Positions 5,390 through 19,436 of a stretch of 19,436 bases of DNA are shown piece by piece. Made by a program: the position numbers and the translations under genes. Numbering within the stretch: position 1 is the stretch's first letter; every line of letters begins with the position of its first letter. Location: positions 1 to 19,436 of the IMG/VR virus record IMGVR_UViG_3300028610_001064, one strand, 5' to 3'. Below the pieces are notes generated by a model. That model was not told where the DNA came from, searched no databases, and saw nothing but the letters and a program-made list of their open reading frames with translations.

Positions 5390-5420
5390 AGTCGTAGAGA
5401 AGCGACTCTAAATTTTTTTT
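5390..5420 (+). terminator. Hairpin plus T8 tract after the MCP gene
   Basis: AGTCG(T)-AGAGAA-(G)CGACT stem followed by TTTTTTTT at 5413-5420. Confidence 0.55.
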
Positions 5421-5434
5421 ATTCTCAAAACAAT

Positions 5435-5505: not shown

Positions 5506-5558
5506 ATAAAAATTAAAAAAATGTTCATAAAAAAATAAAAAAGATGTGATAAAAAAAA

Positions 5559-5939: not shown

Positions 5940-5941
5940 TC

Positions 5942-6325: not shown

Positions 6326-6491
6326 AACAGAAAAAGCAAAAATATCAACACCAAAACAACAAACCGATTTGATGGCATTAGATTCTATTATTAAGGGTCT
6401 TGCTAATCAAATAAAGAACTATCAACAAATAATTAAAAATACATTAGTTACTAAACAAGCACTACAATCAATAAGGAAGAGGTTGTTATAA
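6318..6491 (+). CDS. 57-aa hypothetical protein (not in ORF track)
   Basis: GGAGTGA RBS; MSKTEKAKISTPKQQTDLMALDSIIKGLANQIKNYQQIIKNTLVTKQALQSIRKRLL; TAATG overlap with the next gene. Confidence 0.7.
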   Translation: MSKTEKAKISTPKQQTDLMALDSIIKGLANQIKNYQQIIKNTLVTKQALQSIRKRLL

Positions 6492-6703
6492 TGACAGATA
6501 TAGATATTGTAGAAGCTTTTCAAATAGACGTGCGTCAATCCATCCTTTCATCACTAGCTGGTTTAGTTAAACAGTTAAAAATAGAAGAATTTAAGGAAGA
6601 TTATAATGAGGAGACTCAGACACGGACATTTGAAATAGCCTTTAATGAAGGTAGTATTCGCACCATAGAAATAATATTAGATATAGATCCCGACGGAAAA
6701 TAA
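6491..6703 (+). CDS. 70-aa acidic hypothetical protein (possible tail completion protein)
   Basis: GAGGT RBS; directly precedes the putative tail tube gene. Confidence 0.65.
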   Translation: MTDIDIVEAFQIDVRQSILSSLAGLVKQLKIEEFKEDYNEETQTRTFEIAFNEGSIRTIEIILDIDPDGK

Positions 6704-6724
6704 TTAATAGAAATTGGTGATATT

Positions 6725-7771
6725 ATGGTAGAATATATGGCAAGGGACGGGTACTACATGGCGTATGCCTGTGGTGTCGACCTCGGAAATGTATGGGATA
6801 ATGCTCAAGCAGCCCTAGTAGTAGGGGAGCTTAACGCGATGGATTGGTTCGTTAGTGCTAGTGTACAGCATACTAAACCTAAGACTGTTAGTATCAACCC
6901 TATGACTGCAACCCACTATCCTAAGCGATTACAAGTAGGAAGAGATATAGGAATATTATCTACTATTCATTACCTTCAAACGGGAATTTTAACAGGAAAT
7001 ACTATGGGAGGAATGAGTACTGTAGAAGCTACTCCTAATGTTCATACTATAACGAAGGATACCACAGAAACCCCAACAGCTATAGCGTTTCATGTAGAGA
7101 AGGAAGGCACTACAGCCAATAGAAGAAAAGATATGATGGGGGGTGTTCCAACAGGTTTAGATATTGGAGTTTCAGAACCTGCACCAATAGCTAAACAGAC
7201 CTATAATAGTGAATTCTCTTATACCGGTGCCGGTGGTAACCTATTACAACCAACAGCACTCACTCAAGCTATTCATGCTCCTTATAACTGGTATCATTAT
7301 AGAGATGCTAGTTCAGCCTCAGAGTTTAAATATCACGGTGGTGCTATTAATGTATCTATTATAGGCTTTAATATGCATATTGGTTGGCTTGATAGATTAT
7401 TTGGTCAGTACGATCTTAATGGTTATCCCGCTAACGGTTTAGTAGTTCCTCCCTTTGACTCTTATATTGACGTGGACGTACTAATAAGCGATGCGGGAGG
7501 TACAGACATCAATACTATTGCTGATACCGCTCATGGTTCTTATGCCGGAGATCTTGATTTTATTGCTGATTTTTATGAATCGGCAACTAGGTATTTGAAA
7601 TATACATGGGATAAAATGTATATAGTTCCTAATAGTTATAGAGAAGTATTTCAAGAGGAGGGTTCTTGGTTTGATGGTGCTCAGTTCAGGCTTGCCTTTT
7701 TAGACGAGACTTCCTCTTTAGCAGTAGAAGAGAAAAACGCCCTTAATAACGATTATTATTTGAACCCCTAG
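6725..7771 (+). CDS. Major tail (tube) protein, putative
   Basis: 348 aa, G/T/A-rich and beta-rich; NVHTIT...AIAFHVEK pattern reminiscent of siphovirus tube proteins; position after head-tail genes; GGTGA RBS. Confidence 0.6.
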   Translation: MVEYMARDGYYMAYACGVDLGNVWDNAQAALVVGELNAMDWFVSASVQHTKPKTVSINPMTATHYPKRLQVGRDIGILSTIHYLQTGILTGNTMGGMSTVEATPNVHTITKDTTETPTAIAFHVEKEGTTANRRKDMMGGVPTGLDIGVSEPAPIAKQTYNSEFSYTGAGGNLLQPTALTQAIHAPYNWYHYRDASSASEFKYHGGAINVSIIGFNMHIGWLDRLFGQYDLNGYPANGLVVPPFDSYIDVDVLISDAGGTDINTIADTAHGSYAGDLDFIADFYESATRYLKYTWDKMYIVPNSYREVFQEEGSWFDGAQFRLAFLDETSSLAVEEKNALNNDYYLNP

Positions 7772-7779
7772 GTGATATC

Positions 7780-8250
7780 ATGTCCGAGCAAGAATTAGAG
7801 GAAAAGGATTGGAAAGAACTAACTCAAGGGATTAAGAATACTAGAGAGTTATTAAGAGAATTTCCAGATGGTCTTAAAGGATTAATTAATAAATCAAAAG
7901 AAAAAGCTAAAAGTCAAGTGGAAAATGATCTAGATCGTTTATTTACACCCATAAAAAATACCCTTACAGATACGAAAAATAAACTCAAACAAATAATAGG
8001 GATTGATGGAGCTATGAATAGATTAGAAAATAAAACATTACAATTTATTAATGCATTTGCAAATTTTATTACAAAATTTATGTCCACAATAGGGGTTTTA
8101 GATAGAGGAAACGATGCCTATAAAAATCTAGTGGCATGGATGCAATTGCTAGGAAATCCCTTTAACTATGGTCGTATTGGTTGGTTTTGGGGAATATTAT
8201 TACCGCCCGGCTTACCAGGGCCAGGGGATATAACAATAATAGAGAAGTGA
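7780..8250 (+). CDS. Helical tail-region protein with Pro-rich C-terminus (paralog A)
   Basis: Amphipathic helices, W..LLGN, then PPGLPGPG; similar to 8255..8815. Confidence 0.7.
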   Translation: MSEQELEEKDWKELTQGIKNTRELLREFPDGLKGLINKSKEKAKSQVENDLDRLFTPIKNTLTDTKNKLKQIIGIDGAMNRLENKTLQFINAFANFITKFMSTIGVLDRGNDAYKNLVAWMQLLGNPFNYGRIGWFWGILLPPGLPGPGDITIIEK

Positions 8251-8254
8251 TTAA

Positions 8255-8815
8255 ATGTCTATCGCAGCAATAACAGCAAAGGAAATATTTTTAAAAGAAG
8301 CAATTGCCTTTAAGAAGGAGTTTGCTGTGGGATTTGTACAATTTTTTGCCGGTTCTACTATCGATAACATTAAAGAACATGCTAAAGGAGCAATTGAGGG
8401 AATAACTATTCCCATAGAGAATGAACTTACTGCTATAGGCAATCAAATAACGGGAAGTGAGGGTTTAAACGATTTTATAGAATCCTTAAATATAACATTA
8501 CAAAATGCTATAAAAAAAATTATAGAGGATCCTAATATCACACTTTTACTGTTAGGTACTGGTTATTTTATCAATAAACTTACTGATAAAATAGAAGCTT
8601 TTCTCCAAGATCAGATTGATATGTTAGAACTATGGGCTTTGTGGATAGGGAACTTACCGCCCCCACCTACTCCTAATACTCCGGTGTTTGTTCTCCCTAC
8701 TCCCCCTGGAGGTTTTTTCCCTCCTCCGTCAGATTTTACATACCCCGTCATTATCGATTATCCCGGTGGTGACCCATGGTTACCTGGTGGTGGTGGTGGT
8801 TATGGATGGCATTGA
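8255..8815 (+). CDS. Helical tail-region protein with Pro/Gly-rich C-terminus (paralog B)
   Basis: Amphipathic helices, hydrophobic ITLLLLGTGYFI, WALWIGN, then a long Pro-rich tail. Confidence 0.7.
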   Translation: MSIAAITAKEIFLKEAIAFKKEFAVGFVQFFAGSTIDNIKEHAKGAIEGITIPIENELTAIGNQITGSEGLNDFIESLNITLQNAIKKIIEDPNITLLLLGTGYFINKLTDKIEAFLQDQIDMLELWALWIGNLPPPPTPNTPVFVLPTPPGGFFPPPSDFTYPVIIDYPGGDPWLPGGGGGYGWH

Positions 8816-8824
8816 GGTGATTAT

Positions 8825-9358
8825 ATGGCAACAGGTTTAGAAGATGGTAAGATATATCTACTTGAAACTGCGGGAGACTTAGGAGCAAAAACAAACTGGA
8901 TTGTTGCAGGATCGGGAGATCCAGATACTATAGATACTGAACAATTTACAGAAGGATTAACTCTATGTAAATTTAGTTTTCCTATGAAATTCGTTAAGAG
9001 AGGTAAAACAGGTATGGTCCCTTCTACTGCTAGCGGAGGTCTTACGGGAGTATCTAGGACAGCAAATAAATTTTATAATGCTATTATAATGGGTACTACT
9101 GCGACTAGGGCAGCCGGTTATTTAATAGGAGAATTCCTAATGGATGATAGGCATCATGTACCTGTATCAGCAACCTTTAAAGATTATTTTTTAGTTGTGT
9201 ATTATGGAACAAATGATCATGAGCCCTTTACTAATGTTGCTAATTCAAGACTTTCTTATGCCCCGGGAGTAGTCACCGATTTTGAGATCGCTTGGCGTTC
9301 GGATCAGCATATAAATTTAAATGTGAGATTAAACTGGTGGTCGGCATTCACTTCATAG
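8825..9358 (+). CDS. Putative distal tail or tail-tip protein
   Basis: 177-aa beta-rich ORF upstream of the large tail-tip gene; GAGGTGA RBS; function from synteny only. Confidence 0.5.
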   Translation: MATGLEDGKIYLLETAGDLGAKTNWIVAGSGDPDTIDTEQFTEGLTLCKFSFPMKFVKRGKTGMVPSTASGGLTGVSRTANKFYNAIIMGTTATRAAGYLIGEFLMDDRHHVPVSATFKDYFLVVYYGTNDHEPFTNVANSRLSYAPGVVTDFEIAWRSDQHINLNVRLNWWSAFTS

Positions 9359-9501
9359 AGATATTAGTTTTTATATTTATTATTTTTAGTATTATTTATC
9401 AAAATTATCTTTATTTTAAGAATAAACCTAATTTAGGGACTGCATTTGAGTGGATGGGATATGTATGTTTATTTGACATTATAATGAGGTTATTATGGTA
9501 G
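9337..9501 (+). CDS. Small membrane protein with two hydrophobic segments (holin-like size)
   Basis: ILVFIFIIFSIIY and WMGYVCLFDIIMRLLW; start uncertain (GTG 9337, or ATA 9355 overlapping the upstream TAG). Confidence 0.5.
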   Translation: MVGIHFIEILVFIFIIFSIIYQNYLYFKNKPNLGTAFEWMGYVCLFDIIMRLLW

Positions 9502-12500
9502 ACTGTAGAAGATTTGTAGATTTAGGAATAACAAGTGCAAGAAAACCCGCTAATACCCATTTATGGGTTGTGACTACGGCAGGCTATATCTATATTGTTG
9601 ATTCTGTAGATCCAACAAAGATATATAAATCAGAAGATAAATGTGCTACTTGGACGGAGATCGATGATAGGTTCTTTAATATTCAAGCTCTATTACTAGA
9701 TGAACCTAATAATAAACTGTATTATATTTGTAAGGGAGGAACAGACGTTGATGTTCGAGTTCTTACTCTATCAAATGATAATACTACTAGATATGATGAT
9801 TTTCCTGTAAACTCTGCTTTTGCGTTAGATCTTTTAAATGGAGCAGACCTTTTCCTAGCTAATTCTGGGACTCTATATGCCTTAGTATCGTATGAAGATA
9901 CAAATACTCCCTCCCAATATTTTACCGAAGTCTTTATTGATAATGCCGGGAATTTTGTATATGAGGATGGAGCAAGAGATTTTGTTCTAAGTACTAAAGA
10001 TATATCTTATACTGTTGTTATAGATGATGATGATGTATATTTCATTAGAGAAGAAACCAATGGACCTTTGGTATTTCTCTCTAAATTCGTTGCCTCTACA
10101 TCTACCTATACAGAAGAGCATAAGGCTCTGGGAGCTCTTCTTATGTCCGATTCTGAAAGTCAACAAGGGATAGCCTATGATGGATCCGATAACCTTCTAT
10201 TTATTTTGAAGGTTGGGGGGGTCGATAAATTATATAATTATAATATCACAGGGAATGCATTAACACAGATAGGCACTTATGACATAGCCTTAATGTTAGA
10301 TCGTAATAATATAGGAACAGCTCCTAATGAGCTGGAAAAGGCATTTGGTATTGCCGATAAGATTATTTATGAGATTAAGCCTAAGAGAGGTGGAGTTAAC
10401 CAATTACAAGATTTATCTAGTCAATTATCTGGAAATATTATCTGTATTAATGACCGATTTCTCCTAGCTGAAGATAATGGAACGTGGGATGTTTATGAAT
10501 GGATTAATGTAGCTATTGAGATGTCTAATCTCGTCTATACTGGTGGTATTGTCCCTATACCGAAGCTAGGCTCATTTCAAGTACACGATACCCTAAAGGA
10601 TAAATGGAGTGTAAAAGACTCCTTCAAATATTACGATGATAATGATGTGTTGGAAATATGGGCTAAAATTACAGAAGAATATGTAGATCTTTTTAATAAT
10701 TATCATTATGATTTTGATTTTTTCTCCAATGAAATGTATAGAACACCATACAATAAAGTCTATACCGCTGATAATACGGGAGAAAAACAAATAGATATGA
10801 TCGATAATGCCCTCGATTTTTGTTATCAGAGTTCTTCGATAGTTGCAACCGCAACCGATTGGTCTTATACATACACCAGAAATACTGCCTATTTAATGGA
10901 TTTAGGTAGATTCTTAGAAAGGCAAGTTCCTTATATAGAACCTGATTGTAAGACCTGGACTAAAGCCCATGACGGTTTGGGTAAGAATGCCCAGTACTAT
11001 CCCGGTACAGAGAATTTCAAGGAGGATGTTATAGGTTCTTTTCCTTCTGGTTGGAGTGATAATGATGGTGTTGATTGTGAAACTACTATAATCACTTCTT
11101 TTGACAATCATAGAAAGGTTATGCAGTTAGATGACCAAGGAGTAGGAGCCGCTAACCGATGTCAAGCCCACGTTAGCATTACCCAAGGATTAAATACTGA
11201 GATCGAATTCTGGCTTACTAAAGATTCTGTTGCCGCAAATACTATAGGAAGAGTATATATAAGAGAAGCTAGTGATATTTTAGTATATTTACAATGGGAT
11301 AATGATGATCTCGATTATTATGATGGTGCTTATAAAAGTATAAAAGATAATTTCTTGGTAGCTAACACACTCACCCATTTTAGAATCATATTAGATGATA
11401 CTGCAAATACTTTTGATTGTTATATTAATGGAGATTTAGAGGGAAATAATCTCGCTTATCTGAATAATTCTACTTCGGGAGCAGATGAATTTATTATTGT
11501 AACTGGCGATAACGATACAGGATATAAATGTTATTTAGATGCTTTAGGGATTTCTACCGATCCTACTTATATTATTGGGGATAATGTAGTGGCATGGACC
11601 TTAAACGATGGGAATCAAAACGTTCAAATGATTGATATACCTCGATTAGCCTTGGATAGAGGCGGTTATTTTAGTGGTAGTTTAGGAGTTACTAGAGCAA
11701 CAGTAAGATATAAAGACAATACGACTAGTACTAAGCCCACGATCCCCGCTAGTGGAAAGACCGCAGCCGAACTCTTAACAGGTATTATTGAACTTAAGGA
11801 GTTCCGGGATTCTAAGGTAGAAGATTCACCCGAAGCTGACCAACTAGCTACTAACCGCTATGATATTTTTACCTCTACTATTCAGTTTATAGGTCTTAGG
11901 GTAGAGGGTGAAGGGTTTCTTCAAGAGGGTAAAACCGTTTATCTTGAGAATACTGGACAGATAACTATTACAGCGGGACATTTTGTAATATTACGTTATA
12001 GGAGATGGCCTCTCCAAGATGTCACCAATATGGTAGTTTCTGATAATATTATATTCCCTTTTGAATTTAGTTCTTTTGGAGATACTACGAGATTACAGGT
12101 TCATAGTGCTAACTTACAGAGCTTCGAGAACCAAGCAGATATAATCGCTCATCTTACGAGAGAAGGAGGCTTAGCAGTAAGGCTTATTAATGAGACTGGA
12201 GCCGTATCTGTAAAAGGAAGCTTAGTAGAACCCCATACTAATGATAGATCGTTTGAACTTACTGATGGAGATTGTACTGAATGTTTTGGAGCTGTATATG
12301 AGGATGGTATAGCTGAAGGTGCTGAATGTTTAGTAGTTTTTGGAGGAAGAGTTCAAGTATTACTTAAAGATGCGACAGCTTCTACAACAAAGAACTGGGT
12401 AAAGACTTCAGACGTAGCAGGAAGGGCAGACGCTACAGGAGCCTCCCCCGCAGCAGCCCCACAACATTTCCAAGAGGTAGGGCACTGTATTGAAACTAAA

Positions 12501-12548
12501 GCGGCTGATACTGACGTATTAGCTTATATTATGATGCATTTCTTATGA
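9495..12548 (+). CDS. Large multidomain tail-tip/receptor-binding protein
   Basis: 1017 aa: N-terminal propeller-like region with Asp-box-like YKSEDKCATW, hub-like middle, ConA/LamG-like insert (IEFW, THFRIILD..ANTFDCYINGDL), small C-terminal beta domain. Confidence 0.7.
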   Translation: MVDCRRFVDLGITSARKPANTHLWVVTTAGYIYIVDSVDPTKIYKSEDKCATWTEIDDRFFNIQALLLDEPNNKLYYICKGGTDVDVRVLTLSNDNTTRYDDFPVNSAFALDLLNGADLFLANSGTLYALVSYEDTNTPSQYFTEVFIDNAGNFVYEDGARDFVLSTKDISYTVVIDDDDVYFIREETNGPLVFLSKFVASTSTYTEEHKALGALLMSDSESQQGIAYDGSDNLLFILKVGGVDKLYNYNITGNALTQIGTYDIALMLDRNNIGTAPNELEKAFGIADKIIYEIKPKRGGVNQLQDLSSQLSGNIICINDRFLLAEDNGTWDVYEWINVAIEMSNLVYTGGIVPIPKLGSFQVHDTLKDKWSVKDSFKYYDDNDVLEIWAKITEEYVDLFNNYHYDFDFFSNEMYRTPYNKVYTADNTGEKQIDMIDNALDFCYQSSSIVATATDWSYTYTRNTAYLMDLGRFLERQVPYIEPDCKTWTKAHDGLGKNAQYYPGTENFKEDVIGSFPSGWSDNDGVDCETTIITSFDNHRKVMQLDDQGVGAANRCQAHVSITQGLNTEIEFWLTKDSVAANTIGRVYIREASDILVYLQWDNDDLDYYDGAYKSIKDNFLVANTLTHFRIILDDTANTFDCYINGDLEGNNLAYLNNSTSGADEFIIVTGDNDTGYKCYLDALGISTDPTYIIGDNVVAWTLNDGNQNVQMIDIPRLALDRGGYFSGSLGVTRATVRYKDNTTSTKPTIPASGKTAAELLTGIIELKEFRDSKVEDSPEADQLATNRYDIFTSTIQFIGLRVEGEGFLQEGKTVYLENTGQITITAGHFVILRYRRWPLQDVTNMVVSDNIIFPFEFSSFGDTTRLQVHSANLQSFENQADIIAHLTREGGLAVRLINETGAVSVKGSLVEPHTNDRSFELTDGDCTECFGAVYEDGIAEGAECLVVFGGRVQVLLKDATASTTKNWVKTSDVAGRADATGASPAAAPQHFQEVGHCIETKAADTDVLAYIMMHFL

Positions 12549-12727
12549 CTAAAGATAAAACTATTAAAGTCGGAAGGGAAGAGCATAAGAAAATGAGAAA
12601 ATCAGCGGGGTATAAATATAAGTTTGAAGTTTCTGAACCCAAACCGTACGATCATTATAAATGGTTAGAATCATTATCTAAATTAAAGCTGGGAGGTGAC
12701 AAGACAAATGAGAATGAAAAAGTTTAG
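12545..12727 (+). CDS. 60-aa basic hypothetical protein
   Basis: ATGA overlap with the upstream gene. Confidence 0.65.
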   Translation: MTKDKTIKVGREEHKKMRKSAGYKYKFEVSEPKPYDHYKWLESLSKLKLGGDKTNENEKV

Positions 12728-12902
12728 GCAGATATTAGAACTGCTACCTGAAAGTGAGCAAAAAACAAAAGTTCTAGCTACTCTAAACGTTAAAGCTGAG
12801 AAGACCAAGAGTTTCATATTAAAATGTAAAAAAATAGGTAGATATTTAGTGGAAATCTATTTGATAATCAGTTATCTCATCCAGACGCTAGGGATTGTTT
12901 AA
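12708..12902 (+). CDS. Small protein with C-terminal hydrophobic helix
   Basis: GGAGGTGA RBS favours ATG 12708 over GTG 12696; ends YLVEIYLIISYLIQTLGIV; stop overlaps the stop of the convergent minus-strand ORF. Confidence 0.6.
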   Translation: MRMKKFRQILELLPESEQKTKVLATLNVKAEKTKSFILKCKKIGRYLVEIYLIISYLIQTLGIV

Positions 12903-13093
12903 TCTAACCCGCATTTTTTATCAAATCTAGCTATAAGCCCTGTAGAGTAGGGTTTGATAGGAGGAAAGCATGTTCCAAAATCAGTTACCCCATTCCAATA
13001 CCAAAAATAGAGTTTCTGTTTTTCCTTACTCCATTTATCATGAACTTCTTTATTTTCTTTCCTTATATCTTTTCCACATTCTTCACAACTCAT
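12899..13093 (-). CDS. 64-aa Cys-containing hypothetical protein
   Basis: CEECG at the N-terminus; GAGGT RBS; ATGA coupling. Confidence 0.7.
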   Translation of the reverse strand: MSCEECGKDIRKENKEVHDKWSKEKQKLYFWYWNGVTDFGTCFPPIKPYSTGLIARFDKKCGLD

Positions 13094-13212
13094 GTTTCAA
13101 CCTCTAACTTTTTTACTCTTTTCATTAATTTTAAATAGTTTTTATATTGATTGGTAGCTTTCTTTTCTATTTCTTTAATCTTTTCAAATAGTTGTTCTAT
13201 TAACTCTAACAT
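13090..13212 (-). CDS. 40-aa coiled-coil microprotein (not in track)
   Basis: AGGAGG RBS; MLELIEQLFEKIKEIEKKATNQYKNYLKLMKRVKKLEVET. Confidence 0.65.
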   Translation of the reverse strand: MLELIEQLFEKIKEIEKKATNQYKNYLKLMKRVKKLEVET

Positions 13213-13324
13213 TTATTTTTTCCTCCTTTTCATTTGGACATTCTTCAGGAAAAATATTACCATAATCCAAATATACTCTTAAACAATTCTTAAAGTAGGG
13301 GCACCTCGTTTCACAATCTATCAT
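13184..13324 (-). CDS. 46-aa Cys-rich microprotein (not in track)
   Basis: ATGA coupling; MIDCETRCPYFKNCLRVYLDYGNIFPEECPNEKEEKINVRVNRTTI. Confidence 0.65.
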   Translation of the reverse strand: MIDCETRCPYFKNCLRVYLDYGNIFPEECPNEKEEKINVRVNRTTI

Positions 13325-13512
13325 TTCATCAAATCCAATATGTCTATTATTTTCTGCACTAAATCTTCTCTAGGACCACGATGGGATCCTCCTCCCAAGT
13401 CCTTATAGAAGTTCCTTAATTTCTCTATGTTGACATTTTTTCGCAACCATTCCTTTTGTCTTCTTATCCTACCATACTCTCTATTATATTGTTTGCGATT
13501 TCTTGTCACCAT
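13321..13512 (-). CDS. 63-aa basic hypothetical protein
   Basis: GGAGG RBS; Arg-rich N-terminus. Confidence 0.7.
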   Translation of the reverse strand: MVTRNRKQYNREYGRIRRQKEWLRKNVNIEKLRNFYKDLGGGSHRGPREDLVQKIIDILDLMK

Positions 13513-13684
13513 TCTGTCTTCCCTCCCACTTCTGTATTAATTTTCTCAGAGGCTCAAAACCAAAAGGAATAAGAGAGGGAAATTCATTTAAAGAACATAG
13601 GTCTTGCAGGAACTCCGCGATTGAAGCTTTATAACCTTCCACATACCCATCATCATAAACTTCTTTCGCAAGTTTTTTATTCAT
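13484..13684 (-). CDS. 66-aa protein, paralog of 16673..16885
   Basis: Start reassigned to ATG 13684 after AGGAGGAG; shares AEFLxDL and RKxIxKWEGR with 16673..16885. Confidence 0.7.
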   Translation of the reverse strand: MNKKLAKEVYDDGYVEGYKASIAEFLQDLCSLNEFPSLIPFGFEPLRKLIQKWEGRQNGDKKSQTI

Positions 13685-14384
13685 CGTGCTCCTCCTTGTC
13701 GGTTGCGTCCGACAGCCGCTTATAAAGCTTTCTAAATATTCTCTGAAATTTCTTGGTATTCTTTGATTCAAAATAATCATCTAAAGCATTAAAGAAGTCC
13801 CGCAGCACCTCTTCTAAGGTTATGATTCTTGGCATGGCAACATTATGTCGGAAGTCTTTTAGCTCATCTACTCTGAGTCTATTCCTCTCAGTTAGTTCTT
13901 TCAGCTCCGGAATCTTTTCCTTTATGATATTTGCAAGATCTACCCACCACGTGTCATGAGCAAGTTTCTGTTCTGTAAATTGTTCTTTCAGCTCTTTACT
14001 ATTCTTATTAACAGCTTCTAATGTCTCGTTTCTAAATTTGCAAAACTTATTTCTCCATTGTTTAAGCTCTTTTTCTTGAAATCCATATAAATCATTCACT
14101 AATTTAACCCGCTTTTCGAGAGCCTCTAATCTCTCATTATAATTTGAATGCCCATTCACATTATATTTCTCCAAATTTGAAAGCTTCTTTTCGAGAGCCC
14201 CGATCCTTGGTTCAAGATTCTCTTTATGATAAAGTGCATGTCCTGTCTCATTCTCATATTTAATTTCAAGCTTCTGCTCCAACACTCCAAGTCTTCGCAC
14301 TATTTCTTGATAATCCTTAAGAACTAAATCACTCAACTCATTGTATTGTTTCTTTAGTTCTTCTTCCATATTAAAGTCGCTCAT
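13677..14384 (-). CDS. 235-aa coiled-coil protein ending in RLSDATDKEE
   Basis: Recurrent R[LI]xxLExx[LV] trimeric coiled-coil motifs (RLGVLEQKL, RIGALEKKL, RLEALEKRV, RIITLEEVL). Confidence 0.8.
   Translation of the reverse strand: MSDFNMEEELKKQYNELSDLVLKDYQEIVRRLGVLEQKLEIKYENETGHALYHKENLEPRIGALEKKLSNLEKYNVNGHSNYNERLEALEKRVKLVNDLYGFQEKELKQWRNKFCKFRNETLEAVNKNSKELKEQFTEQKLAHDTWWVDLANIIKEKIPELKELTERNRLRVDELKDFRHNVAMPRIITLEEVLRDFFNALDDYFESKNTKKFQRIFRKLYKRLSDATDKEEHDE
13689..13719 (-). repeat. Junction palindrome repeat, copy 1
   Basis: Minus strand GCGGC-TGTCGG-ACGCAA-CCGACA-AGGAGGAG; identical to 16688-16718. Confidence 0.95.
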
Positions 14385-14557
14385 GGGGTGTCCAACCTCT
14401 TTTCAAATAACTTAGGATAATGTTGGCATGTAAGTAGCCTCCAACCATGTTTATCTATCTCATATATTCCCATTTCAACCCTATAACTTAATTTTAGTTG
14501 TCCTATACACTCATTACATATACAGTCAATTAAGATTGGTTTAATTTTAGACACCAT
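14381..14557 (-). CDS. 58-aa Cys/His microprotein (not in track)
   Basis: GAGGTGA RBS; TAATG and ATGA coupling; CICNEC...TCQH. Confidence 0.65.
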   Translation of the reverse strand: MVSKIKPILIDCICNECIGQLKLSYRVEMGIYEIDKHGWRLLTCQHYPKLFEKRLDTP

Positions 14558-14673
14558 TAGGGTAATGTCACCTCTCTAAACTCGGGCTCCCACAGAGTCC
14601 AACTCAAGGTACTATAAATGAAGCCATGATCAACCGCCTCTAAATAATGGTAAAAATCCGGTACATCACTCAT
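14557..14673 (-). CDS. 38-aa hypothetical protein
   Basis: Start reassigned to ATG 14673 (GAGGT RBS, ATGA overlap); MSDVPDFYHYLEAVDHGFIYSTLSWTLWEPEFREVTLP. Confidence 0.6.
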   Translation of the reverse strand: MSDVPDFYHYLEAVDHGFIYSTLSWTLWEPEFREVTLP

Positions 14674-14759
14674 GGTGTATACCTCGCCATTGTAATACAT
14701 AAAAAAATTAAAAATATAGTAAATAACATCCATAAACAAAACTCTGTCTCATCGCTCAC
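14670..14759 (-). CDS. 29-aa single-TM peptide (not in track)
   Basis: GTGA overlap upstream and ATGA downstream; MSDETEFCLWMLFTIFLIFLCITMARYTP. Confidence 0.6.
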   Translation of the reverse strand: MSDETEFCLWMLFTIFLIFLCITMARYTP

Positions 14760-15040
14760 TCTAATCGCCTCACGATCCTATAAAGTTTTGATTGTCCTGG
14801 AATTCTAATCATATTATCATTTAATATTCCTTGATTAAGATCTTCTACTTTTACTACAAATTCTAAGTCTTTTTTAATTTGATTATTAATAGCATTTCTA
14901 ATACATTCTGCTATAGATGCGTAATATCCCCATTTTATAAGCTTTTCTATTGTTGTCCTTACTTTACGCGTAATATTGACAGTCATAACCAATAAAGCAT
15001 GATTAGTATTGTCCTTTGTCTCTAACCTTCTATTTCCCAT
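14756..15040 (-). CDS. Ribbon-helix-helix (CopG/Arc/MetJ) DNA-binding protein
   Basis: MTVNITRKVRTTIEKLIKWGYYASIAECIRNAI matches the archaeal RHH pattern (LxxxGxYxSxSExIRxAI). Confidence 0.85.
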   Translation of the reverse strand: MGNRRLETKDNTNHALLVMTVNITRKVRTTIEKLIKWGYYASIAECIRNAINNQIKKDLEFVVKVEDLNQGILNDNMIRIPGQSKLYRIVRRLE

Positions 15041-15568
15041 TTATTTCCACTCCAGTTTGCCTATAACCCATGCGGATTTTTCACTCACTATTACCCTCGT
15101 ACCCCCTTCCTTAATACTCTCTGTCCTAATAACAAACTGTTTAGCTAAAAAGGAACATTTGTTATCATAGCCTATGAGCTTGTAAGACTTACTAGAGTAG
15201 TCCGTACACTCTCGAACATCTACAAAGTTCTGAGTCTGTACTACTTTCGGCAAGGGCTTTGAGTCGGTTGGTACTGGCTTTTCAACCACTCTCGTAGGTT
15301 CTGCAGTTGGATTGGTCATCGATACAACCCTGTCCCCTACCCATGTATTTTGCCCACTTACTGATTTCTCACCCTCCCAAGCATTAGGAAAACCAGGACT
15401 ACTGATTCTTATCTTAGGTTTCTCCTCATCCTGTATGTTAAATAAATGTCTAGCTTGGTAAGCTTTAACAAAACCTTCGAGAGCTTCCGCAATCCTTTCC
15501 AGATAACCATTTCTCTTTTCTTGGGTATCATTATTAATACCCTCCCATGTAGGTTGATATTCACTCAT
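15041..15568 (-). CDS. 175-aa hypothetical protein
   Basis: Low-complexity linker and a compact beta-rich C-terminal domain; no confident family. Confidence 0.75.
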   Translation of the reverse strand: MSEYQPTWEGINNDTQEKRNGYLERIAEALEGFVKAYQARHLFNIQDEEKPKIRISSPGFPNAWEGEKSVSGQNTWVGDRVVSMTNPTAEPTRVVEKPVPTDSKPLPKVVQTQNFVDVRECTDYSSKSYKLIGYDNKCSFLAKQFVIRTESIKEGGTRVIVSEKSAWVIGKLEWK

Positions 15569-15744
15569 AATCTTAAGAACCCCTCTATATTGTTTCTAAG
15601 TTTTTGAGCATTTTCCGTATAGCCTAACCAACCAGTAAGGAACTCATATAGTTCATGATAACAATCATTTATATGGTCACACTCGTTTGTTTCACAATCT
15701 ATACTCTGATAATTCCCAATATTTAGTTTAATTGTTAATCTCAT
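15565..15744 (-). CDS. 59-aa hypothetical protein (not in track)
   Basis: ATGA coupling at both ends; MRLTIKLNIGNYQSIDCETNECDHINDCYHELYEF... Confidence 0.7.
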   Translation of the reverse strand: MRLTIKLNIGNYQSIDCETNECDHINDCYHELYEFLTGWLGYTENAQKLRNNIEGFLRL

Positions 15745-15911
15745 TTCAATAATGTCTCCAATACTTTTTTAAAACTTTTTATTTTAATTTCTCTCGAATC
15801 AAAAACCTCTTTACTTCGTATAAGAGAAGACTTTAGACTTTCATTCTCTCTCTCCATAAAAGAGACTTTTTCACGAATATAATTTCTAACAATTTTTAGT
15901 TCTTCACTCAT
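15741..15911 (-). CDS. 56-aa hypothetical protein (not in track)
   Basis: GGAGG RBS; ATGA coupling at both ends; MSEELKIVRNYIREKVSFMERENESLK... Confidence 0.7.
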   Translation of the reverse strand: MSEELKIVRNYIREKVSFMERENESLKSSLIRSKEVFDSREIKIKSFKKVLETLLK

Positions 15912-15923
15912 TTCAATTCCTCC
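15903..15923 (-). repeat. 21-bp junction repeat GGAGGAATTGAAATGAGTGAA, copy 1
   Basis: Identical to 16165-16185; contains RBS, stop and start. Confidence 0.9.
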
Positions 15924-16057
15924 TCTATATCAAGTTCCCAGTCCTCATCAATTAAGACTTGTCTAATTTTCTTCATAGTATCAATAATTTCTTGATACAT
16001 GCCTGGTCTTTTAAAAGATATTGTTAAAATTACTTCCACATTTGTTTTTACATTCAT
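15908..16057 (-). CDS. 49-aa hypothetical protein (not in track)
   Basis: GGAGG RBS; ATGA coupling; MNVKTNVEVILTISFKRPGMYQEIIDTMKKIRQVLIDEDWELDIEEELK. Confidence 0.7.
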   Translation of the reverse strand: MNVKTNVEVILTISFKRPGMYQEIIDTMKKIRQVLIDEDWELDIEEELK

Positions 16058-16173
16058 TTAATTTCATCCTCCATTAATATTTTTTTAACCGATTTCGGGT
16101 CTCGGGACGCTTTATCGGTTTTAAGACCATACTTTTCTTTAAATTCCTTACTAAACCCCTTCCATTCACTCAT
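16054..16173 (-). CDS. 39-aa hypothetical protein (not in track)
   Basis: GGAGG RBS; ATGA coupling; MSEWKGFSKEFKEKYGLKTDKASRDPKSVKKILMEDEIK. Confidence 0.65.
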   Translation of the reverse strand: MSEWKGFSKEFKEKYGLKTDKASRDPKSVKKILMEDEIK

Positions 16174-16185
16174 TTCAATTCCTCC
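16165..16185 (-). repeat. 21-bp junction repeat GGAGGAATTGAAATGAGTGAA, copy 2
   Basis: Identical to 15903-15923. Confidence 0.9.
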
Positions 16186-16331
16186 ACTTTATAATCCTCT
16201 AAATTTGCAATTATATGATCTCTCAATTCATTAAAAAACTCTTTTCCAACTGAGAAATCAAACAACATTTTCTTTGTAGTTAAATCCATCAATTGTAGAT
16301 GAATCCAACCATCTTTTTCAAATATTTTCAA
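16170..16331 (-). CDS. 53-aa hypothetical protein, TTG start (not in track)
   Basis: GGAGGT RBS 8 nt upstream of TTG; MKIFEKDGWIHLQLMDLTTKKMLFDFSVGKEFFNELRDHII... Confidence 0.65.
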   Translation of the reverse strand: MKIFEKDGWIHLQLMDLTTKKMLFDFSVGKEFFNELRDHIIANLEDYKVEELK

Positions 16332-16458
16332 TAAATTCTACCTCCAATATTTTTTTCATTCTTTTTTTATTTCTTTTTTTTAACTCTTTAATTTCTGATC
16401 CGGGAATTGCCAGTTTATCTCGCAACTGTTCACTTAAAAAATATATTTTATAGCTCAT
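16318..16458 (-). CDS. 46-aa basic hypothetical protein (not in track)
   Basis: ATGA coupling; MSYKIYFLSEQLRDKLAIPGSEIKELKKRNKKRMKKILEVEFIENI. Confidence 0.6.
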   Translation of the reverse strand: MSYKIYFLSEQLRDKLAIPGSEIKELKKRNKKRMKKILEVEFIENI

Positions 16459-16676
16459 GATAGATCCCCCTTAAATTGTATAGAGACCTTATAACAAAAC
16501 TCTCTAAGACTACATCTAACAAGACAGTTTACCCCTTTCCCCTTAAGTTCATTAATTAAGCCAAAACAAGAAGGTCTTCTCTCAGCAAGACTCTTTACCC
16601 TTCTACCACAAACATATAGTCTTAACTCTATCCTCTCATATCTTTTGGTTTTGTATAATTTAGGTTTTAATATCAT
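16455..16676 (-). CDS. 73-aa Cys-rich protein
   Basis: Start reassigned to ATG 16676 (ATGA overlap); PSCFG...CLVRC....FC metal-binding-like pattern. Confidence 0.7.
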   Translation of the reverse strand: MILKPKLYKTKRYERIELRLYVCGRRVKSLAERRPSCFGLINELKGKGVNCLVRCSLREFCYKVSIQFKGDLS

Positions 16677-16885
16677 AGCCCCATCAACTCCTCCTTGTCG
16701 GTTGCGTCCGACAGCCGCCCTTCCCATTTCTCTATCGTTTTCCTTACTTCAGACCAACACAATCCCGTTGATGGCTTTTTATATGCTCTTTTCAAGTCTT
16801 TAAGGAACTCTGCTCTCTGTTTACTTAGTTGTGTCTCAACAAACTCCTCGCATACTTTACTTCTTATCCACTCTTTACCTGCCAT
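16673..16885 (-). CDS. 70-aa protein, paralog of 13484..13684, ending in RLSDATDKEE
   Basis: Start reassigned to ATG 16885 (GGGGTGA RBS, TAATG overlap). Confidence 0.7.
   Translation of the reverse strand: MAGKEWIRSKVCEEFVETQLSKQRAEFLKDLKRAYKKPSTGLCWSEVRKTIEKWEGRLSDATDKEELMGL
16688..16718 (-). repeat. Junction palindrome repeat, copy 2
   Basis: 31 of 31 identical to copy 1. Confidence 0.95.
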
Positions 16886-16992
16886 TAGAACATCACCCCT
16901 AGATATAGTGCTAGTACCGCTAAAAAGTACATCATAAAGAAGATTGATAGTAGGGTGAGCAGGCCGCATACGACCCAGTTAGATTTGGACAT
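16885..16992 (-). CDS. 35-aa single-TM peptide (not in track)
   Basis: MSKSNWVVCGLLTLLSIFFMMYFLAVLALYLGVMF; TAATG overlap with the next gene. Confidence 0.65.
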   Translation of the reverse strand: MSKSNWVVCGLLTLLSIFFMMYFLAVLALYLGVMF

Positions 16993-17164
16993 CTTTCTTT
17001 TCCTCTCTTTTCTTTTCTAACACTATCATTTCTTCAGCTAAATTGAATGGAAATCTACTCCTTCCTGGAGGACAATCTGGATTAGTACAACCCCAATAAT
17101 GTTGGTATCCACAATAAGACATAGGTTCTCCGCATCTGATACATTCATGTTCCTCTTTACTCAT
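16979..17164 (-). CDS. 61-aa zinc-ribbon protein
   Basis: CIRCGEPM...YWGCTNPDC (topoisomerase C4-like); start reassigned to ATG 17164. Confidence 0.75.
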   Translation of the reverse strand: MSKEEHECIRCGEPMSYCGYQHYWGCTNPDCPPGRSRFPFNLAEEMIVLEKKREEKKDVQI

Positions 17165-17349
17165 CGCTGGGCCTCCAAACATTCATAATCATAATTATGC
17201 TGACAATATTCGTTCAGCTTACAGATATTACATAGGTCCCTTTGTTCTTTCTCTTCAATAAACTTAAACAGCTCCAGTCTCTTACTAAAAGTAGCCTTAC
17301 CATAGAAAGGGTGAATTTTTTCATTGAATTCTTCAAAATCTTTATACAT
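17161..17349 (-). CDS. 62-aa protein with a C-terminal Cys cluster
   Basis: CNICKLNEYC......C; GGAGG RBS. Confidence 0.7.
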   Translation of the reverse strand: MYKDFEEFNEKIHPFYGKATFSKRLELFKFIEEKEQRDLCNICKLNEYCQHNYDYECLEAQR

Positions 17350-17363
17350 TTTAGTTAGCCTCC
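17346..17363 (-). repeat. 18-bp junction repeat GGAGGCTAACTAAAATGT, copy 1
   Basis: Identical to 17667-17684; variant at 18428-18443. Confidence 0.85.
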
Positions 17364-17492
17364 AGTTAGTATAAAACCTACTCTTTTCTTTAGATTAGTA
17401 GTTTTTTGTTTAGCTTTTATTAAATCAGTATCCATTAACATCCTAATTTCTGTAAGCTCTTCATAAATCTCTAATAATACATTACTACTCAT
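17355..17492 (-). CDS. 45-aa hypothetical protein (not in track)
   Basis: AAGGAGG RBS; MSSNVLLEIYEELTEIRMLMDTDLIKAKQKTTNLKKRVGFILTGG. Confidence 0.65.
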   Translation of the reverse strand: MSSNVLLEIYEELTEIRMLMDTDLIKAKQKTTNLKKRVGFILTGG

Positions 17493-17670
17493 CGCTGTCC
17501 TCCTTCTCAAACAACATTTCATATATTTGTCCCATCCACAGACAGTCTCGACACATCAAGATTATAGGTGAGTCCCCTGTTATATTTGAGCCTTTACAAT
17601 TAGGACAATGAACCTGAACTTTCTTACCATGATTCTCTCTAGTATGAATCAAATCATAATTAAATAACAT
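17485..17670 (-). CDS. 61-aa zinc-ribbon protein
   Basis: CPNCKGSNI...CRDC. Confidence 0.75.
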   Translation of the reverse strand: MLFNYDLIHTRENHGKKVQVHCPNCKGSNITGDSPIILMCRDCLWMGQIYEMLFEKEDSDE

Positions 17671-17684
17671 TTTAGTTAGCCTCC
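17667..17684 (-). repeat. 18-bp junction repeat GGAGGCTAACTAAAATGT, copy 2
   Basis: Identical to 17346-17363; overlaps palindrome copy 3 through the shared GGAGG. Confidence 0.85.
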
Positions 17685-17776
17685 TTGCCGGTTGCGTCGG
17701 GCTGCCGCTCCTCAGCTTCTTTACATGGACAATAAGGATAATGGTCTCCGTACCGGCATTTTAGACAATCAACCAT
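17672..17776 (-). CDS. 34-aa Cys-rich microprotein ending in RQPDATGKEAN (not in track)
   Basis: AGGAGG RBS; MVDCLKCRYGDHYPYCPCKEAEERQPDATGKEAN. Confidence 0.65.
   Translation of the reverse strand: MVDCLKCRYGDHYPYCPCKEAEERQPDATGKEAN
17680..17708 (-). repeat. Junction palindrome repeat, copy 3 (diverged)
   Basis: Minus strand GCGGC-AGCCCG-ACGCAA-CCGGCA-AGGAGG; loop invariant, one compensatory T-A to C-G change, two mismatches. Confidence 0.85.
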
Positions 17777-17779
17777 TAT

Positions 17780-17920
17780 TTATGTTTCCTCCTTATTATT
17801 CTTAGAAATTAACTCTCCGCATTTATAACAATGATTCTTTCCTAAGATTTTCTCAACACAAGTACCTTCCTCTCTTTTCTTTCTACACTCCTTTAAGGTC
17901 TCAACAATACAGATTGTCAT
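17780..17920 (-). CDS. 46-aa Cys-rich microprotein (not in track)
   Basis: GGAGG RBS; MTICIVETLKECRKKREEGTCVEKILGKNHCYKCGELISKNNKEET. Confidence 0.65.
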   Translation of the reverse strand: MTICIVETLKECRKKREEGTCVEKILGKNHCYKCGELISKNNKEET

Positions 17921-17924
17921 TTTC

Positions 17925-18149
17925 CTAAGCCTCCACCTTGTCGGTTGCGTCCGACAGTCGCTCTTCCTTATATATTAGGCTAGGATGCTTGGTACAGAAC
18001 TCGGCAACGACCAGAGCAAAATCATCGGAAGGTAAGTGAGCGTGCGGGTATAGCTCTGCTCTGAATACTTTATGTCGCTCGGTGTTATGGGCTTCTTTTT
18101 CCTTCTCAGACCAATCATAAATGATCTTACCATTAATTCTCCAAGGCAT
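17925..18149 (-). CDS. 74-aa hypothetical protein ending in RLSDATDKVEA
   Basis: GAGGT RBS; TAATG overlap. Confidence 0.7.
   Translation of the reverse strand: MPWRINGKIIYDWSEKEKEAHNTERHKVFRAELYPHAHLPSDDFALVVAEFCTKHPSLIYKEERLSDATDKVEA
17931..17961 (-). repeat. Junction palindrome repeat, copy 4
   Basis: 29 of 31 identical to copy 1; both differences lie outside the palindrome. Confidence 0.95.
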
Positions 18150-18430
18150 TATGCTAGGACCTCTTTAACTATAATTTGATATTTCTTATCCGGATCAAAA
18201 AAGAGGGTAGATGTTTGGGGGATCCGGAAATACATATAATTATTTTTTTTATCTAAATAAGAAGGAGAATCATTCCAGGTAGTAATAAAACCGTCAGGCA
18301 TAGAAGAAGCATTAATTTTCCTTCGGTCCGATTCCTCTTGATTCTTCCATGAACAATCCACACAGATACCTTCTGAAGTAAAAGTGTCCTTTCTGACCTC
18401 ACACTGAGGGCATATTTCTAAATTAACCAT
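18149..18430 (-). CDS. 93-aa protein with zinc ribbon and possible AbrB-like C-terminus
   Basis: CPQC...CVDC; C-terminal YFRIP...DPDKKYQIIVKEV resembles swapped-hairpin DNA binders. Confidence 0.65.
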   Translation of the reverse strand: MVNLEICPQCEVRKDTFTSEGICVDCSWKNQEESDRRKINASSMPDGFITTWNDSPSYLDKKNNYMYFRIPQTSTLFFDPDKKYQIIVKEVLA

Positions 18431-18670
18431 TTAATTAGCCTCCCTTTTCTCTATTCTTGAGATTATAGTATTTAGAAAGTCCCGCATTTTAATCATCTCT
18501 TCAACACTAGTAGCCATTTCAATTAAGTCGGGAGCCTCTTGAGTATTAGCATAAAACTCCGCATAGATTGCCTCATCCTTGACTGAACCAGAGAATAGGG
18601 TAAGATTTCTATACCCTGTAGTGTCTTCATACGCATCCATTACTAAACTTTTATTAGCCATTTTTTTCAC
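18431..18670 (-). CDS. First gene of the leftward operon, hypothetical
   Basis: GTG 18670 or ATG 18661; downstream of a BRE-TATA promoter. Confidence 0.7.
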   Translation of the reverse strand: MKKMANKSLVMDAYEDTTGYRNLTLFSGSVKDEAIYAEFYANTQEAPDLIEMATSVEEMIKMRDFLNTIISRIEKREAN

Positions 18671-18727
18671 ACTATTTAAGATTATTTGATTTATATGTTT
18701 TATCTATGTTTTATATATGAACACTAG

Positions 18728-19161: not shown

Positions 19162-19176
19162 CCAAAAACTTATAAA
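19162..19176 (+). promoter_or_regulatory. Candidate BRE-TATA promoter for a leaderless transcript
   Basis: CCAAAAAC-TTATAAA ending 23 nt before ATG 19200. Confidence 0.5.
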
Positions 19177-19199
19177 CATAGACAGTGTATATTTATATA

Positions 19200-19325
19200 A
19201 TGATGTCTGAAACTATAGCAAAAGAATTCCTAGAGAAGAAAGAAATATTCAACTCATTAGGGTTTGAATTAGTAGGGACTAAAGACATTAATGAAGACAC
19301 CATCTACTTAGTAAAAGAGAAATAA
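19200..19325 (+). CDS. 41-aa hypothetical protein (not in track)
   Basis: MMSETIAKEFLEKKEIFNSLGFELVGTKDINEDTIYLVKEK; reads into the terminal repeat. Confidence 0.55.
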   Translation: MMSETIAKEFLEKKEIFNSLGFELVGTKDINEDTIYLVKEK

Positions 19326-19436
19326 TTTCTCAATCCTACCCAGACAGATAAGGTTGAACACTTCAGCCGAAAGTACCTAGTTCTTGTTTGATTCGTTCAA
19401 CCCTCACCTTATTATTAATCATTAGCAGACTTCACT
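19293..19436 (+). repeat. Terminal direct repeat, right copy (144 bp)
   Basis: Identical to 1-144. Confidence 0.97.

Follow-up and report, generated by a model that had tools for sequence, protein, structure and literature searches.

Short sequences that recur at the borders of phage genes have been described in several settings. In the boundary or "linker" model (Susskind & Botstein 1978; Clark et al. 2001, for HK620 and the lambdoid phages), conserved borders are proposed to guide homologous swaps of modules, and PMC3029335, through which both papers are cited here, notes that at most mosaic boundaries no such sequences can be found. In T4-type phages, the promoter-early stem-loop elements (PeSLs; Arbiol et al. 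2010, PMC2839356; Comeau et al. 2014, PMC4122927) are cassettes that lie between genes and combine a strong sigma-70 promoter with a terminator stem-loop, and their recombination products (mini-circles) have been shown experimentally (PMC2839356, PMC4122927). The start-associated sequences (SAS) of Cluster K mycobacteriophages (Pope et al. 2011, PMC3203893) have a 13-bp consensus, GGGATAGGAGCCC, that contains a Shine-Dalgarno (SD) sequence and lies upstream of many non-structural genes; they mostly follow intergenic gaps of more than 50 bp and stay with a gene family across genomes, half of the copies have an upstream inverted repeat (extended SAS, ESAS), and they were interpreted as translation or regulatory sites, not as sites of recombination (PMC3203893). 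Here we describe repeated translation junctions, which we call connectors, in the early operon of IMG/VR virus record IMGVR_UViG_3300028610_001064 (a complete viral contig of 19,436 bp, called the window below) and in the corresponding gene arrays of its relatives. The SAS are the closest precedent for connectors at the level of sequence, and nothing directly equivalent was found in the literature on linkers of the ribosome-binding-site (RBS) type.

The connectors include the families F1, F2, F3, J17920, J16676 and J13684, which are best read as clade-wide modules of 16–24 nt that join unrelated microgenes of a hypervariable early operon, in a group of sediment phages with genomes of about 19–20 kb. 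The observation is confirmed and extends from one genome to a clade.

Connectors at the gene junctions of the early operon

The junctions of the early operon are tight, with 26 of 27 either overlapping or leaving a gap of at most 5 nt, and 11 of them are ATGA overlaps. An earlier note, made from this DNA alone, had pointed out three families of repeated RBS-stop-start sequences (F1–F3) between unrelated genes on the minus strand. Reading that strand directly verified the coordinates and sequences of all three, including a partial F1 copy and a variant of F2 (Table 1), and a further F2 variant, GGAGGCTTAGGAAAATG at 17938–17918 (the J17920 site), was absent from the note. Each copy of F1, F2 and F3 spans a genuine start codon with a good SD together with the stop codon of the upstream gene; two open reading frame (ORF) starts were moved to internal ATGs, at 17492 and 17164, to reveal the junction layout at F3. 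Each connector has a GGAGG SD, a fixed A/T-rich spacer and ATG, with the upstream stop inside it or overlapping it. All connectors are on the coding strand of the early array; neither the rest of the window nor the opposite strand yielded a copy. That the flanking genes are unrelated also held, since BLASTP among the proteins flanking repeated junctions returned no alignment at E<=100, a result to be read with the limit that short proteins set on homology detection: some of these neighbors could be very distant homologs, as illustrated by the similar C-termini of the 39-aa gene and a 41-aa gene of the relative L135.

Table 1. Connectors and associated elements of the early operon. Positions refer to the window unless a relative (L number) is named.
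Feature	Position	Strand	Description
Early operon	12899..18661	minus	about 28 microgenes of 34–235 aa; hypervariable; contains all connector families (from the ORF list and start contexts)
F1 copy a	16165..16185	minus	GGAGGAATTGAAATGAGTGAA; SD, 7-nt spacer and ATG of 39-aa gene (start 16173); TGA stop of 53-aa gene overlaps
F1 copy b	15903..15923	minus	same 21-mer, GGAGGAATTGAAATGAGTGAA; start of 56-aa gene (15911); overlaps stop of 49-aa gene
Partial F1	15740..15750	minus	TTGAAATGAG at start 15744; 11-nt anchored run with both F1 copies
F1-like junction	16049..16076	minus	TAATGGAGGATGAAATTAAATGA, 71% to F1, start 16057; 19-nt exact match at an L135 junction, 16 nt in L159
F2 copy a	17667..17684	minus	GGAGGCTAACTAAAATGT; start of 61-aa gene (17670); upstream 34-aa gene ends in KEAN and its stop within the motif; hairpin copy 3 immediately precedes
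F2 copy b	17346..17363	minus	same 18-mer, GGAGGCTAACTAAAATGT; start of 62-aa gene (17349); upstream gene ends in TGG and its stop, in another reading frame than at copy a
F2 variant	18428..18443	minus	GGAGGCTAATTAAATG; start of 93-aa gene (18430); upstream gene ends in REAN and its stop
J17920 (F2-like)	17918..17939	minus	AAGGTGGAGGCTTAGGAAAATG; 14/17 positions match F2
F3 copy a	17486..17503	minus	GGAGGACAGCGATGAGTA, start 17492; 12-nt core CAGCGATGAGTA at 17497–17486 after GGAGG; upstream TAG stop sits in 8-nt overlap ATGAGTAG
F3 copy b	17158..17176	minus	GGAGGCCCAGCGATGAGTA, start 17164; 12-nt core CAGCGATGAGTA at 17169–17158 after GGAGG; ATGA overlap with upstream stop; 12-nt anchored run with copy a
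J16676	16673..16696	minus	AAGGAGGAGTTGATGGGGCTATGA
J13684	13680..13698	minus	CAAGGAGGAGCACGATGAA; exact 18–19-nt match at L158 and L159 junctions
27-nt island	16960..16986	minus	codons 3–11 of 35-aa membrane microgene (start 16992)
D2 hairpin element, copy 4	17931..17967	minus	stem TGTCGG, loop ACGCAA, stem CCGACA; immediately 5′ of SD
D2, other window copies	17678–17714, 16688–16724, 13689–13725	minus	GC-rich element, directly 5′ of SD
D2 in relatives	L153 2840–2857; L158 4078–4095; L159 8925–8942		

Several features of the connectors can be noted. First, the F1 repeat (repeat family D3) extends beyond its exact core to 28 nt at 93% identity. Second, connectors usually carry stop codons in both frames other than that of the start (e.g. 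ATGAGTGA, ATGAGTAA, CTAACTAAAATG); this applies to F2, where TAA occurs twice, to F1 and the common start ATGAGTGA, and to F3, with ATGAGTAG and ATGAGTAA. Both frames are closed at 67% of family junctions, 44% of singletons and 11% of random sites; the difference between the first two (Fisher test, p=0.007) is suggestive only, as family members are non-independent. Third, the start ATGAGT(GA/AA/AG), which combines the start codon with stops in both other frames, is used by 8 of the 45 genes in the window (starts 1871, 1977, 6318, 15568, 15911, 16173, 17164 and 17492), where we estimate that 0.2–0.5 would be expected; the upstream stop lies inside the octamer in all eight, five of them as ATGA overlaps and three as 8-nt overlaps. 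Fourth, the reading frame of the upstream gene is not fixed: in 12 of 13 F2 copies the upstream protein terminates in E-A-N/I, one copy being in another frame, and in most F1 copies it terminates in E-E-L-K, again with one copy in another frame. Because F1 and F2 each occur in two upstream frames, the motif is conserved as nucleotides and not as peptide, although "frame-agnostic" would overstate the case, given how unevenly the upstream frames are used.

In a separate observation on initiation sites, the late structural genes (plus-strand starts 4424, 6725, 7780, 8255, 8825 and 9495) mostly have a 3′-shifted SD of the (G)AGGTGAT type, unlike the GGAGG of the early microgenes, and the two SD types may represent two classes of initiation site linked to expression class.

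An SD, an A-rich spacer, an ATGA overlap and a Met-Ser-Glu start together restrict the available sequence space, and identical 12–21-mers could in principle arise from this by chance or compositional convergence. The general preference for ATGAGT(GA/AA/AG) starts, found at 28 of 175 junctions across nine related arrays, speaks for such an origin. As a null that keeps the RBS and ATG composition, the starts of 45 genes were lined up at their start codons and the letters of every column were permuted among the genes (2000 shuffles). Runs of at least 17 nt number two in the window (21 and 18 nt) against 0.001 expected per shuffle, and runs of at least 12 nt number four against 0.36 expected (P=0.0015). 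F1 and F2 are therefore beyond chance, which counts in favor of the earlier note, since matches at the frequency expected from RBS and start composition would have refuted it. The two 12-nt copies of F3 by themselves lie in the chance range for the longest run, and a 12-nt pair is present among the late genes too (starts 6725 and 9495). Support for F3 comes only from the relatives, in the form of a 17-nt island in L153 and two variant copies in L158.

The excess does not depend on where starts are placed. In the early region there are 7 exact direct repeats of at least 14 nt where dinucleotide shuffles give 0.26, and in the late region there is 1 where they give 0.87; the excess is restricted to early arrays, and the same is seen in the relatives L131, L135 and L137. 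Among the 175 junctions of the nine related early arrays there are 77 pairs with a start-anchored exact run of at least 14 nt, whereas position-specific shuffling gives a mean of 0.84 and a maximum of 4. In 70 of the 77 pairs both neighboring genes are unrelated, and opposite-strand controls gave essentially zero matches.

The wider database calls for some caution. The exact F1 20-mer and F2 17-mer each occur in more than 115 unrelated IMG/VR contigs, mostly at one conserved, homologous locus in a few abundant phage groups of about 50% GC. The RBS-start sequence space is therefore small, a naive 4^n calculation overstates the rarity of such strings, and identity between connectors by convergence is not negligible. 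Within the clade the density is of another order, with about 8 exact F2 copies in about 45 kb, orders of magnitude above the database background. Taking these figures with the shuffles and with the missing excess in late genes of the same genomes, we give chance a minimal probability overall, and for F1 and F2 it is largely refuted.

One of the groups recovered with the F1 20-mer (loci L281–L395, e.g. L350–L388) deserves a remark of its own. In this unrelated and abundant group of about 50% GC the 20-mer stands at the head of a gene that begins MSDYISREAA; this gene occurs with either of two upstream flanks, and its sequence becomes variable after about 20 nt. It may be an analogous mosaic junction in other phages.

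Re-use of connectors among related phages

Relatives were reached through searches with the large terminase (TerL), together with a word search for the 46-aa protein and exact-protein look-ups. Those found through TerL come from sediment and subsurface metagenomes and have terminases 76–90% identical to that of the window. Their early genes are strikingly different: the complete relative L131 has homologs of only 3 of the 28 early microgenes though its structural genes are 76–87% identical, and in L135 (TerL 89% identical) no homolog of the 28 was detected. The word search yielded L153, a contig of 4.6 kb that belongs to the assembly and metagenome of the window phage, and the 175-aa early "anchor" protein, carried by 36 relatives of which five were retrieved, led to four further arrays (L156, L158, L159 and L161). 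Which of L153, L156, L158, L159 and L161 have a homolog differs from one window microgene to the next. A related-locus search of IMG/VR with the 175-aa and 235-aa early proteins returned zero relatives, as did megablast of the early region against GenBank phages.

Between the window and L153, five islands of 17–27 nt are 100% identical, all lie at junctions, and different genes lie between them, with the 30-nt flanks only 10–43% identical. They are J17920 (22 nt), F3 (17 nt), the first codons of the 35-aa gene (27 nt), J16676 (24 nt) and F1 (21 nt). The J17920 island (L153 2748–2769) has unrelated sequence on both sides and in L153 is joined to the homolog of the 34-aa gene, with the 46-aa gene (17780–17920) missing. 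The F3 island (L153 3129–3145) again sits between unrelated genes. At J16676 (L153 3349–3372) both flanking genes are unrelated and the 73-aa gene of the window is replaced by an 84-aa gene, and the island at 16960–16986 (L153 3298–3324, 100%) there heads a different 25-codon ORF. In the genes that the two phages share (34-aa, 46-aa and 175-aa), homology begins or ends at the ATG. Insertions, deletions and replacements between the window and this co-occurring relative thus end at connectors or exactly at start codons, in line with the expectation of the earlier note that they would end in the motifs. The lack of any difference over the 111 nt of the islands, set against the 6–17% divergence of shared genes, was dropped as a sign of hyper-conservation: the argument is circular, the islands having been defined as exact matches.

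The same pattern extends across the clade. Thirteen junctions from 7 genomes belong to F1 and thirteen from 6 genomes to F2; F3, J17920, J16676 and J13684 are each found in 2–3 genomes, and about a third of all junctions belong to a recurrent family. The F1 16–21-mer stands before unrelated genes in L153, L156, L158 and L161, and close variants of it are present in L159, L156 and L158. For F2, L156 has two exact copies of the 17-mer, L158 three and L159 one. Of 167 ends of homology blocks between arrays, 35% lie no more than 5 nt from a start codon, against 5% of random positions. A fixed gene order across the junctions, which would have spoken against the exchange proposed in the earlier note, was not seen, and connectors stand between different unrelated microgenes in at least 7 genomes.

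Module and gene are separable in both directions. F1 precedes six unrelated genes, and conversely a single gene family can follow different modules: the CPECGG zinc-ribbon microgene comes after F1 in L153 and after other junctions in L158 and L135, and the 56-aa gene family (MSEEL...) comes after F1-like junctions in L159 and L156 and after a different junction in L158. Homologs of the 74-aa (18149) and 62-aa genes, adjacent in L131 with a different junction, are separated in the window by four genes, and the outer junctions there are both of F2 type. Finally, copies within one genome share genome-specific variants (GGAGGCGATCTAAAATGG three times in L137, the F3 variant GGAGGAGGACGGCGATGA twice in L158, and a variant found twice in L131), which points to concerted evolution, that is, copying between junctions.

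The alternation F2-F3-F2-F3 with near-equal spacing (321 and 328 nt), and the two F1 copies 262 nt and two genes apart, might suggest that the junctions are relics of tandem duplication of two-gene units (periods of 262 and about 321–328 nt) whose coding parts have diverged. The array does contain one true paralog pair elsewhere, the minus-strand 70-aa (16673–16885) and 66-aa (13484–13684) microgenes, 47% identical over 34 aa (E=2e-7). Such an origin was nevertheless rejected and is very unlikely: the supposed duplicates have no BLASTP similarity at the threshold given above, the frame of the gene upstream of F2 copy b differs from that at copy a, the same motifs stand between yet other unrelated genes in other genomes, and equal spacing follows from the uniform size of the microgenes.

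Nor does the arrangement result from assembly. Logan unitigs do break at the D2 and F2 repeats, and chimeric joins made by an assembler at shared k-mers could mimic both the repeats and the mosaic relatives. The same genome has, however, been assembled independently, identically or nearly so, from other samples and with other pipelines (JGI Ga0209976; JGI Ga0114923, 99.97%; ENA ERZ27251120), so that its arrangement is not an artifact. The arrangements of the relatives are reproduced as well (L153 in the independent assemblies L154 and L155, L159 in L160, L156 in L157), and islands of 17–27 nt are far shorter than assembly k-mers. We regard the probability of this explanation as vanishingly small.

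The window phage and an L153-type phage co-occur in the same metagenome and run, the pair is again found together in ENA assembly ERZ27251120 and in JGI sample Ga0209976 (L155), and co-infection of one host by the two is conceivable. In the probable source run, contigs of at least one related phage matching window positions 13000–18700 have depths of 4–9x, compared with about 40x for the window phage. Candidate read-level joints among the contigs of that run proved to be contigs of the co-occurring L153-type relative and not deletion variants of the window.

Other features of these genomes are recorded here. The window has a GC content of 35% and a 144-nt terminal direct repeat; structural and packaging genes lie on the plus strand (252–12727) and include the large terminase (match to phrog_2, E=5e-28), a weak portal match and a 1017-aa tail protein. 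The non-coding region at 19166–19328 and 1–36, between the start of the early operon and the terminase (cf. L153 702–971 and L135 4296–4417), is the sole sizeable non-structural stretch with 76–98% nucleotide similarity to relatives and is likely to be an early promoter, origin or packaging region. In L156 (7001–7528), L159 (7001–7489) and L161 (251–793) the 59-aa gene (15565–15744) and the C-terminal part of the 175-aa anchor gene (15041–15568) correspond to one fused ORF with the N-terminus MKLTIKLN..., whereas in the window, L153 and L158 the anchor gene has a different N-terminal part; the most conserved early protein is itself mosaic at the level of domains. Close to the far end of its early array, L131 carries on the minus strand (1019–1077) a perfect 30-nt repeat, ATAAAGAAATTGACGAATATAATTATGATA, in tandem with a 29-nt period; it looks iteron-like in sequence, and no equivalent was seen in the window.

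Start-site elements, the D2 hairpin and described systems

The connectors might be start-associated regulatory motifs, that is, cis-acting translation elements under selection (sites of initiation or re-initiation, or operators for an RNA-binding factor of phage or host), with gene swaps occurring by illegitimate recombination followed by selection and the motifs not serving as substrates. The targets of T4 RegA are a known precedent for regulation at start sites. Several observations suit this explanation. The motif edges coincide with the SD-to-start unit; the F1 context has a minimum free energy (MFE) of 0 kcal/mol and is predicted to be wholly unstructured as RNA, as for an efficient initiation site (F2 context, -4 kcal/mol, z=-0.24); F2-family variants partly fit, in our reading, an extended anti-SD complement (GGAGGNGATC-like); and identical 17–20-mers are present in unrelated phages.

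A further point in its favor is the D2 hairpin, which stands directly 5′ of the SD at 4 of about 28 window junctions, including that of F2 copy a, and which resembles a factor-binding or structural RNA. It is 18 nt long with a 6-bp stem and an invariant ACGCAA loop. Over seven copies from four genomes, 92.9% of cells are paired and 3 of the 6 pairs show compensatory change, the stem appearing as GTCGG/CCGAC, GCCCG/CGGGC and GCGAG/CTCGC with pairing kept; none of 500 shuffles reached this score and slid controls gave at most 38%. Because the compensatory changes alter the encoded C-terminal peptide (R-x-x-D-A-T-x-K-E), selection acts on the structure of the nucleic acid. D2 has neither a U-tract nor a promoter; candidate roles for it are those of a factor-binding RNA hairpin, a boxB-like site or a stabilizer of the mRNA. 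Searches of IMG/VR gave only scattered single chance matches to a 16-nt D2 pattern and none to a 20-nt pattern. We also note that the similarity between the 70-aa and 66-aa paralogs stops at KWEGR, precisely where the D2 element begins in one of them, and that a related gene end, EEKWEGKLKE followed by a stop, is present in L131.

A regulatory role is paralleled by the SAS, which likewise contain an SD, serve non-structural genes only and precede different gene families (PMC3203893). The likeness extends to the connectors being asymmetric motifs with an SD core 3–7 nt from the start, in many copies and one orientation, with an inverted repeat just upstream of a subset. The differences are no less clear. 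Here there are several families, none with the consensus GGGATAGGAGCCC, and they reach through the start codon and the upstream stop at junctions where no gap of more than 50 bp is found; the motif does not stay with its gene family, genes and motifs instead re-assorting; and the arms of the ESAS do not covary as RNA, while the D2 hairpin does.

These differences also weigh on the regulatory explanation itself. One consensus would be expected of it, and there are several distinct families, each on only 2–4 of the roughly 28 genes of a genome; one gene family stands behind different motifs in different genomes, unlike the SAS and ESAS; genome-specific variants common to several copies need copying between junctions, which is recombination itself; and islands of identity with unrelated genes on both sides are unexpected from illegitimate joins. 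As a sufficient account we hold regulation to be rather unlikely, while recognizing that regulatory and recombination roles can both be real.

The connectors resemble the PeSLs in being repeated motifs of hyperplastic regions with many small ORFans (L131 lacks homologs of 25 of the 28 early genes), in spanning the upstream stop, the SD and the downstream start (anatomy as in PMC2839356), and in that indels and replacements between relatives end in them; for both, a role in modular shuffling has been proposed. They differ in that F1–F3 lie at overlapping or abutting junctions and have neither promoter nor terminator. No promoter-like site, and in particular no strong early promoter of sigma-70 type, is shared by F1, F2 or F3, and no stable terminator or attenuator stem-loop was found in the F1 or F2 contexts. 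The early region as a whole has no excess of promoter-like sites (25, against 27 +/- 5 in shuffles) or of terminator-like sites, and it matched no Rfam family. The D2 type comes nearest, combining a stem-loop with an SD, again without promoter or U-tract.

With the linker model the connectors have in common that short sequences, conserved across genomes, stand at the borders of exchangeable modules with non-homologous flanks and coinciding breakpoints, and that both are proposed to guide intact swaps; the pattern seen among the arrays is that which this model predicts. The linker here is, however, a 16–24-nt initiation/stop junction in a gap-free coupled operon, the unit exchanged is a single microgene of 34–90 codons, and a few linker families recur many times per genome.

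Integron attC sites are imperfect palindromes of 57–141 bp and work with a tyrosine-recombinase integrase. The likeness to integrons is one of logic only (cassettes of one gene each, promoterless and all oriented alike, with a short element, structured or recurrent, at every border). Connectors are shorter and unstructured, the hairpin is confined to the few junctions named above, and no integrase or recombinase was matched in scans of part of the ORFs (10 early proteins with Pfam, 20 proteins with PHROGs). In the same scans the early proteins had no recognizable function, save for one weak ribbon-helix-helix (RHH) match.

Proposed exchange of microgenes at connectors

We propose, with a probability of about 0.6, that connectors are functional translational-coupling modules that double as points of short-homology crossover or template switching. 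They are best read as a translation-junction version of the boundary sequences of Botstein and Clark and of the PeSLs of T4. Because several junctions of a genome, and co-infecting relatives too, carry the same module, that module would provide short perfect homology. A crossover or template switch within it would leave both neighboring ORFs and their coupling intact, and exchange at modules would delete, duplicate, insert or replace single microgenes, and would also homogenize the modules within a genome. The comparative pattern fits the idea, already put forward in the earlier note, that genes are swapped here by microhomologous recombination; that crossovers fall within the modules, that enzymes act there and that coupling is functionally preserved is what we infer from the sequences. 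The interpretation in the note is partly supported: connectors are re-used among unrelated genes, and a frame-agnostic plug-and-play array is borne out only in part, as 12 of 13 F2 copies and most F1 copies keep to one upstream frame.

Several points weigh against this proposal. First, 16–21 nt is short for recombination of the RecA type, and a recombinase or annealing protein was not recognized among the scanned proteins. Second, the edges of identity coincide with the functional unit from the start of the SD to the start codon, as selection on a translation element alone would give. Third, some of the identity could be convergent, identical 17–20-mers being found in unrelated phages. Fourth, only about a third of the junctions belong to a recurrent family. 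Fifth, the loss of the 46-aa gene in L153 is a gene-precise indel with just 4 nt in common at the joint, and because at least one such indel shares so little, illegitimate events followed by selection also contribute. Finally, no recombinant or deletion variant between two copies was seen in the assembled contigs of one run, in which rare variants cannot be revealed.

A bolder version would make the array a dedicated cassette-exchange system, in which standard translation junctions are the attachment points at which co-infecting phages insert, excise and trade single microgenes, an integron-like but integrase-free and translation-coupled "plug-and-play" store of accessory genes. In such a system a phage-encoded factor may recognize the D2 hairpin or the connector, and the array would be more than a site where general recombination happens to succeed. 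We think this improbable.

Two views of phage mosaicism have been held, one of homologous exchange at linkers (Botstein, Clark) and one in which illegitimate joins form at random and selection then filters them (Hendrix, Hatfull). The former has suffered from the fact that linkers are usually not found. The present clade makes the linker model directly testable, because about a third of the junctions of its accessory arrays belong to recurrent exact families and replacements end there. Here boundary linkers and PeSL-like shuffling are realized as translational-coupling junctions at which single microgenes would be exchanged. For annotation, connector families help to call the true starts of microgenes of 34–60 codons. 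More generally, the findings suggest that one junction can serve both for translational coupling and as a recombination module; if true, this would account for how operons densely packed with overlapping microgenes remain expressible despite near-complete turnover of their genes, in phages whose structural genes remain 76–90% identical.

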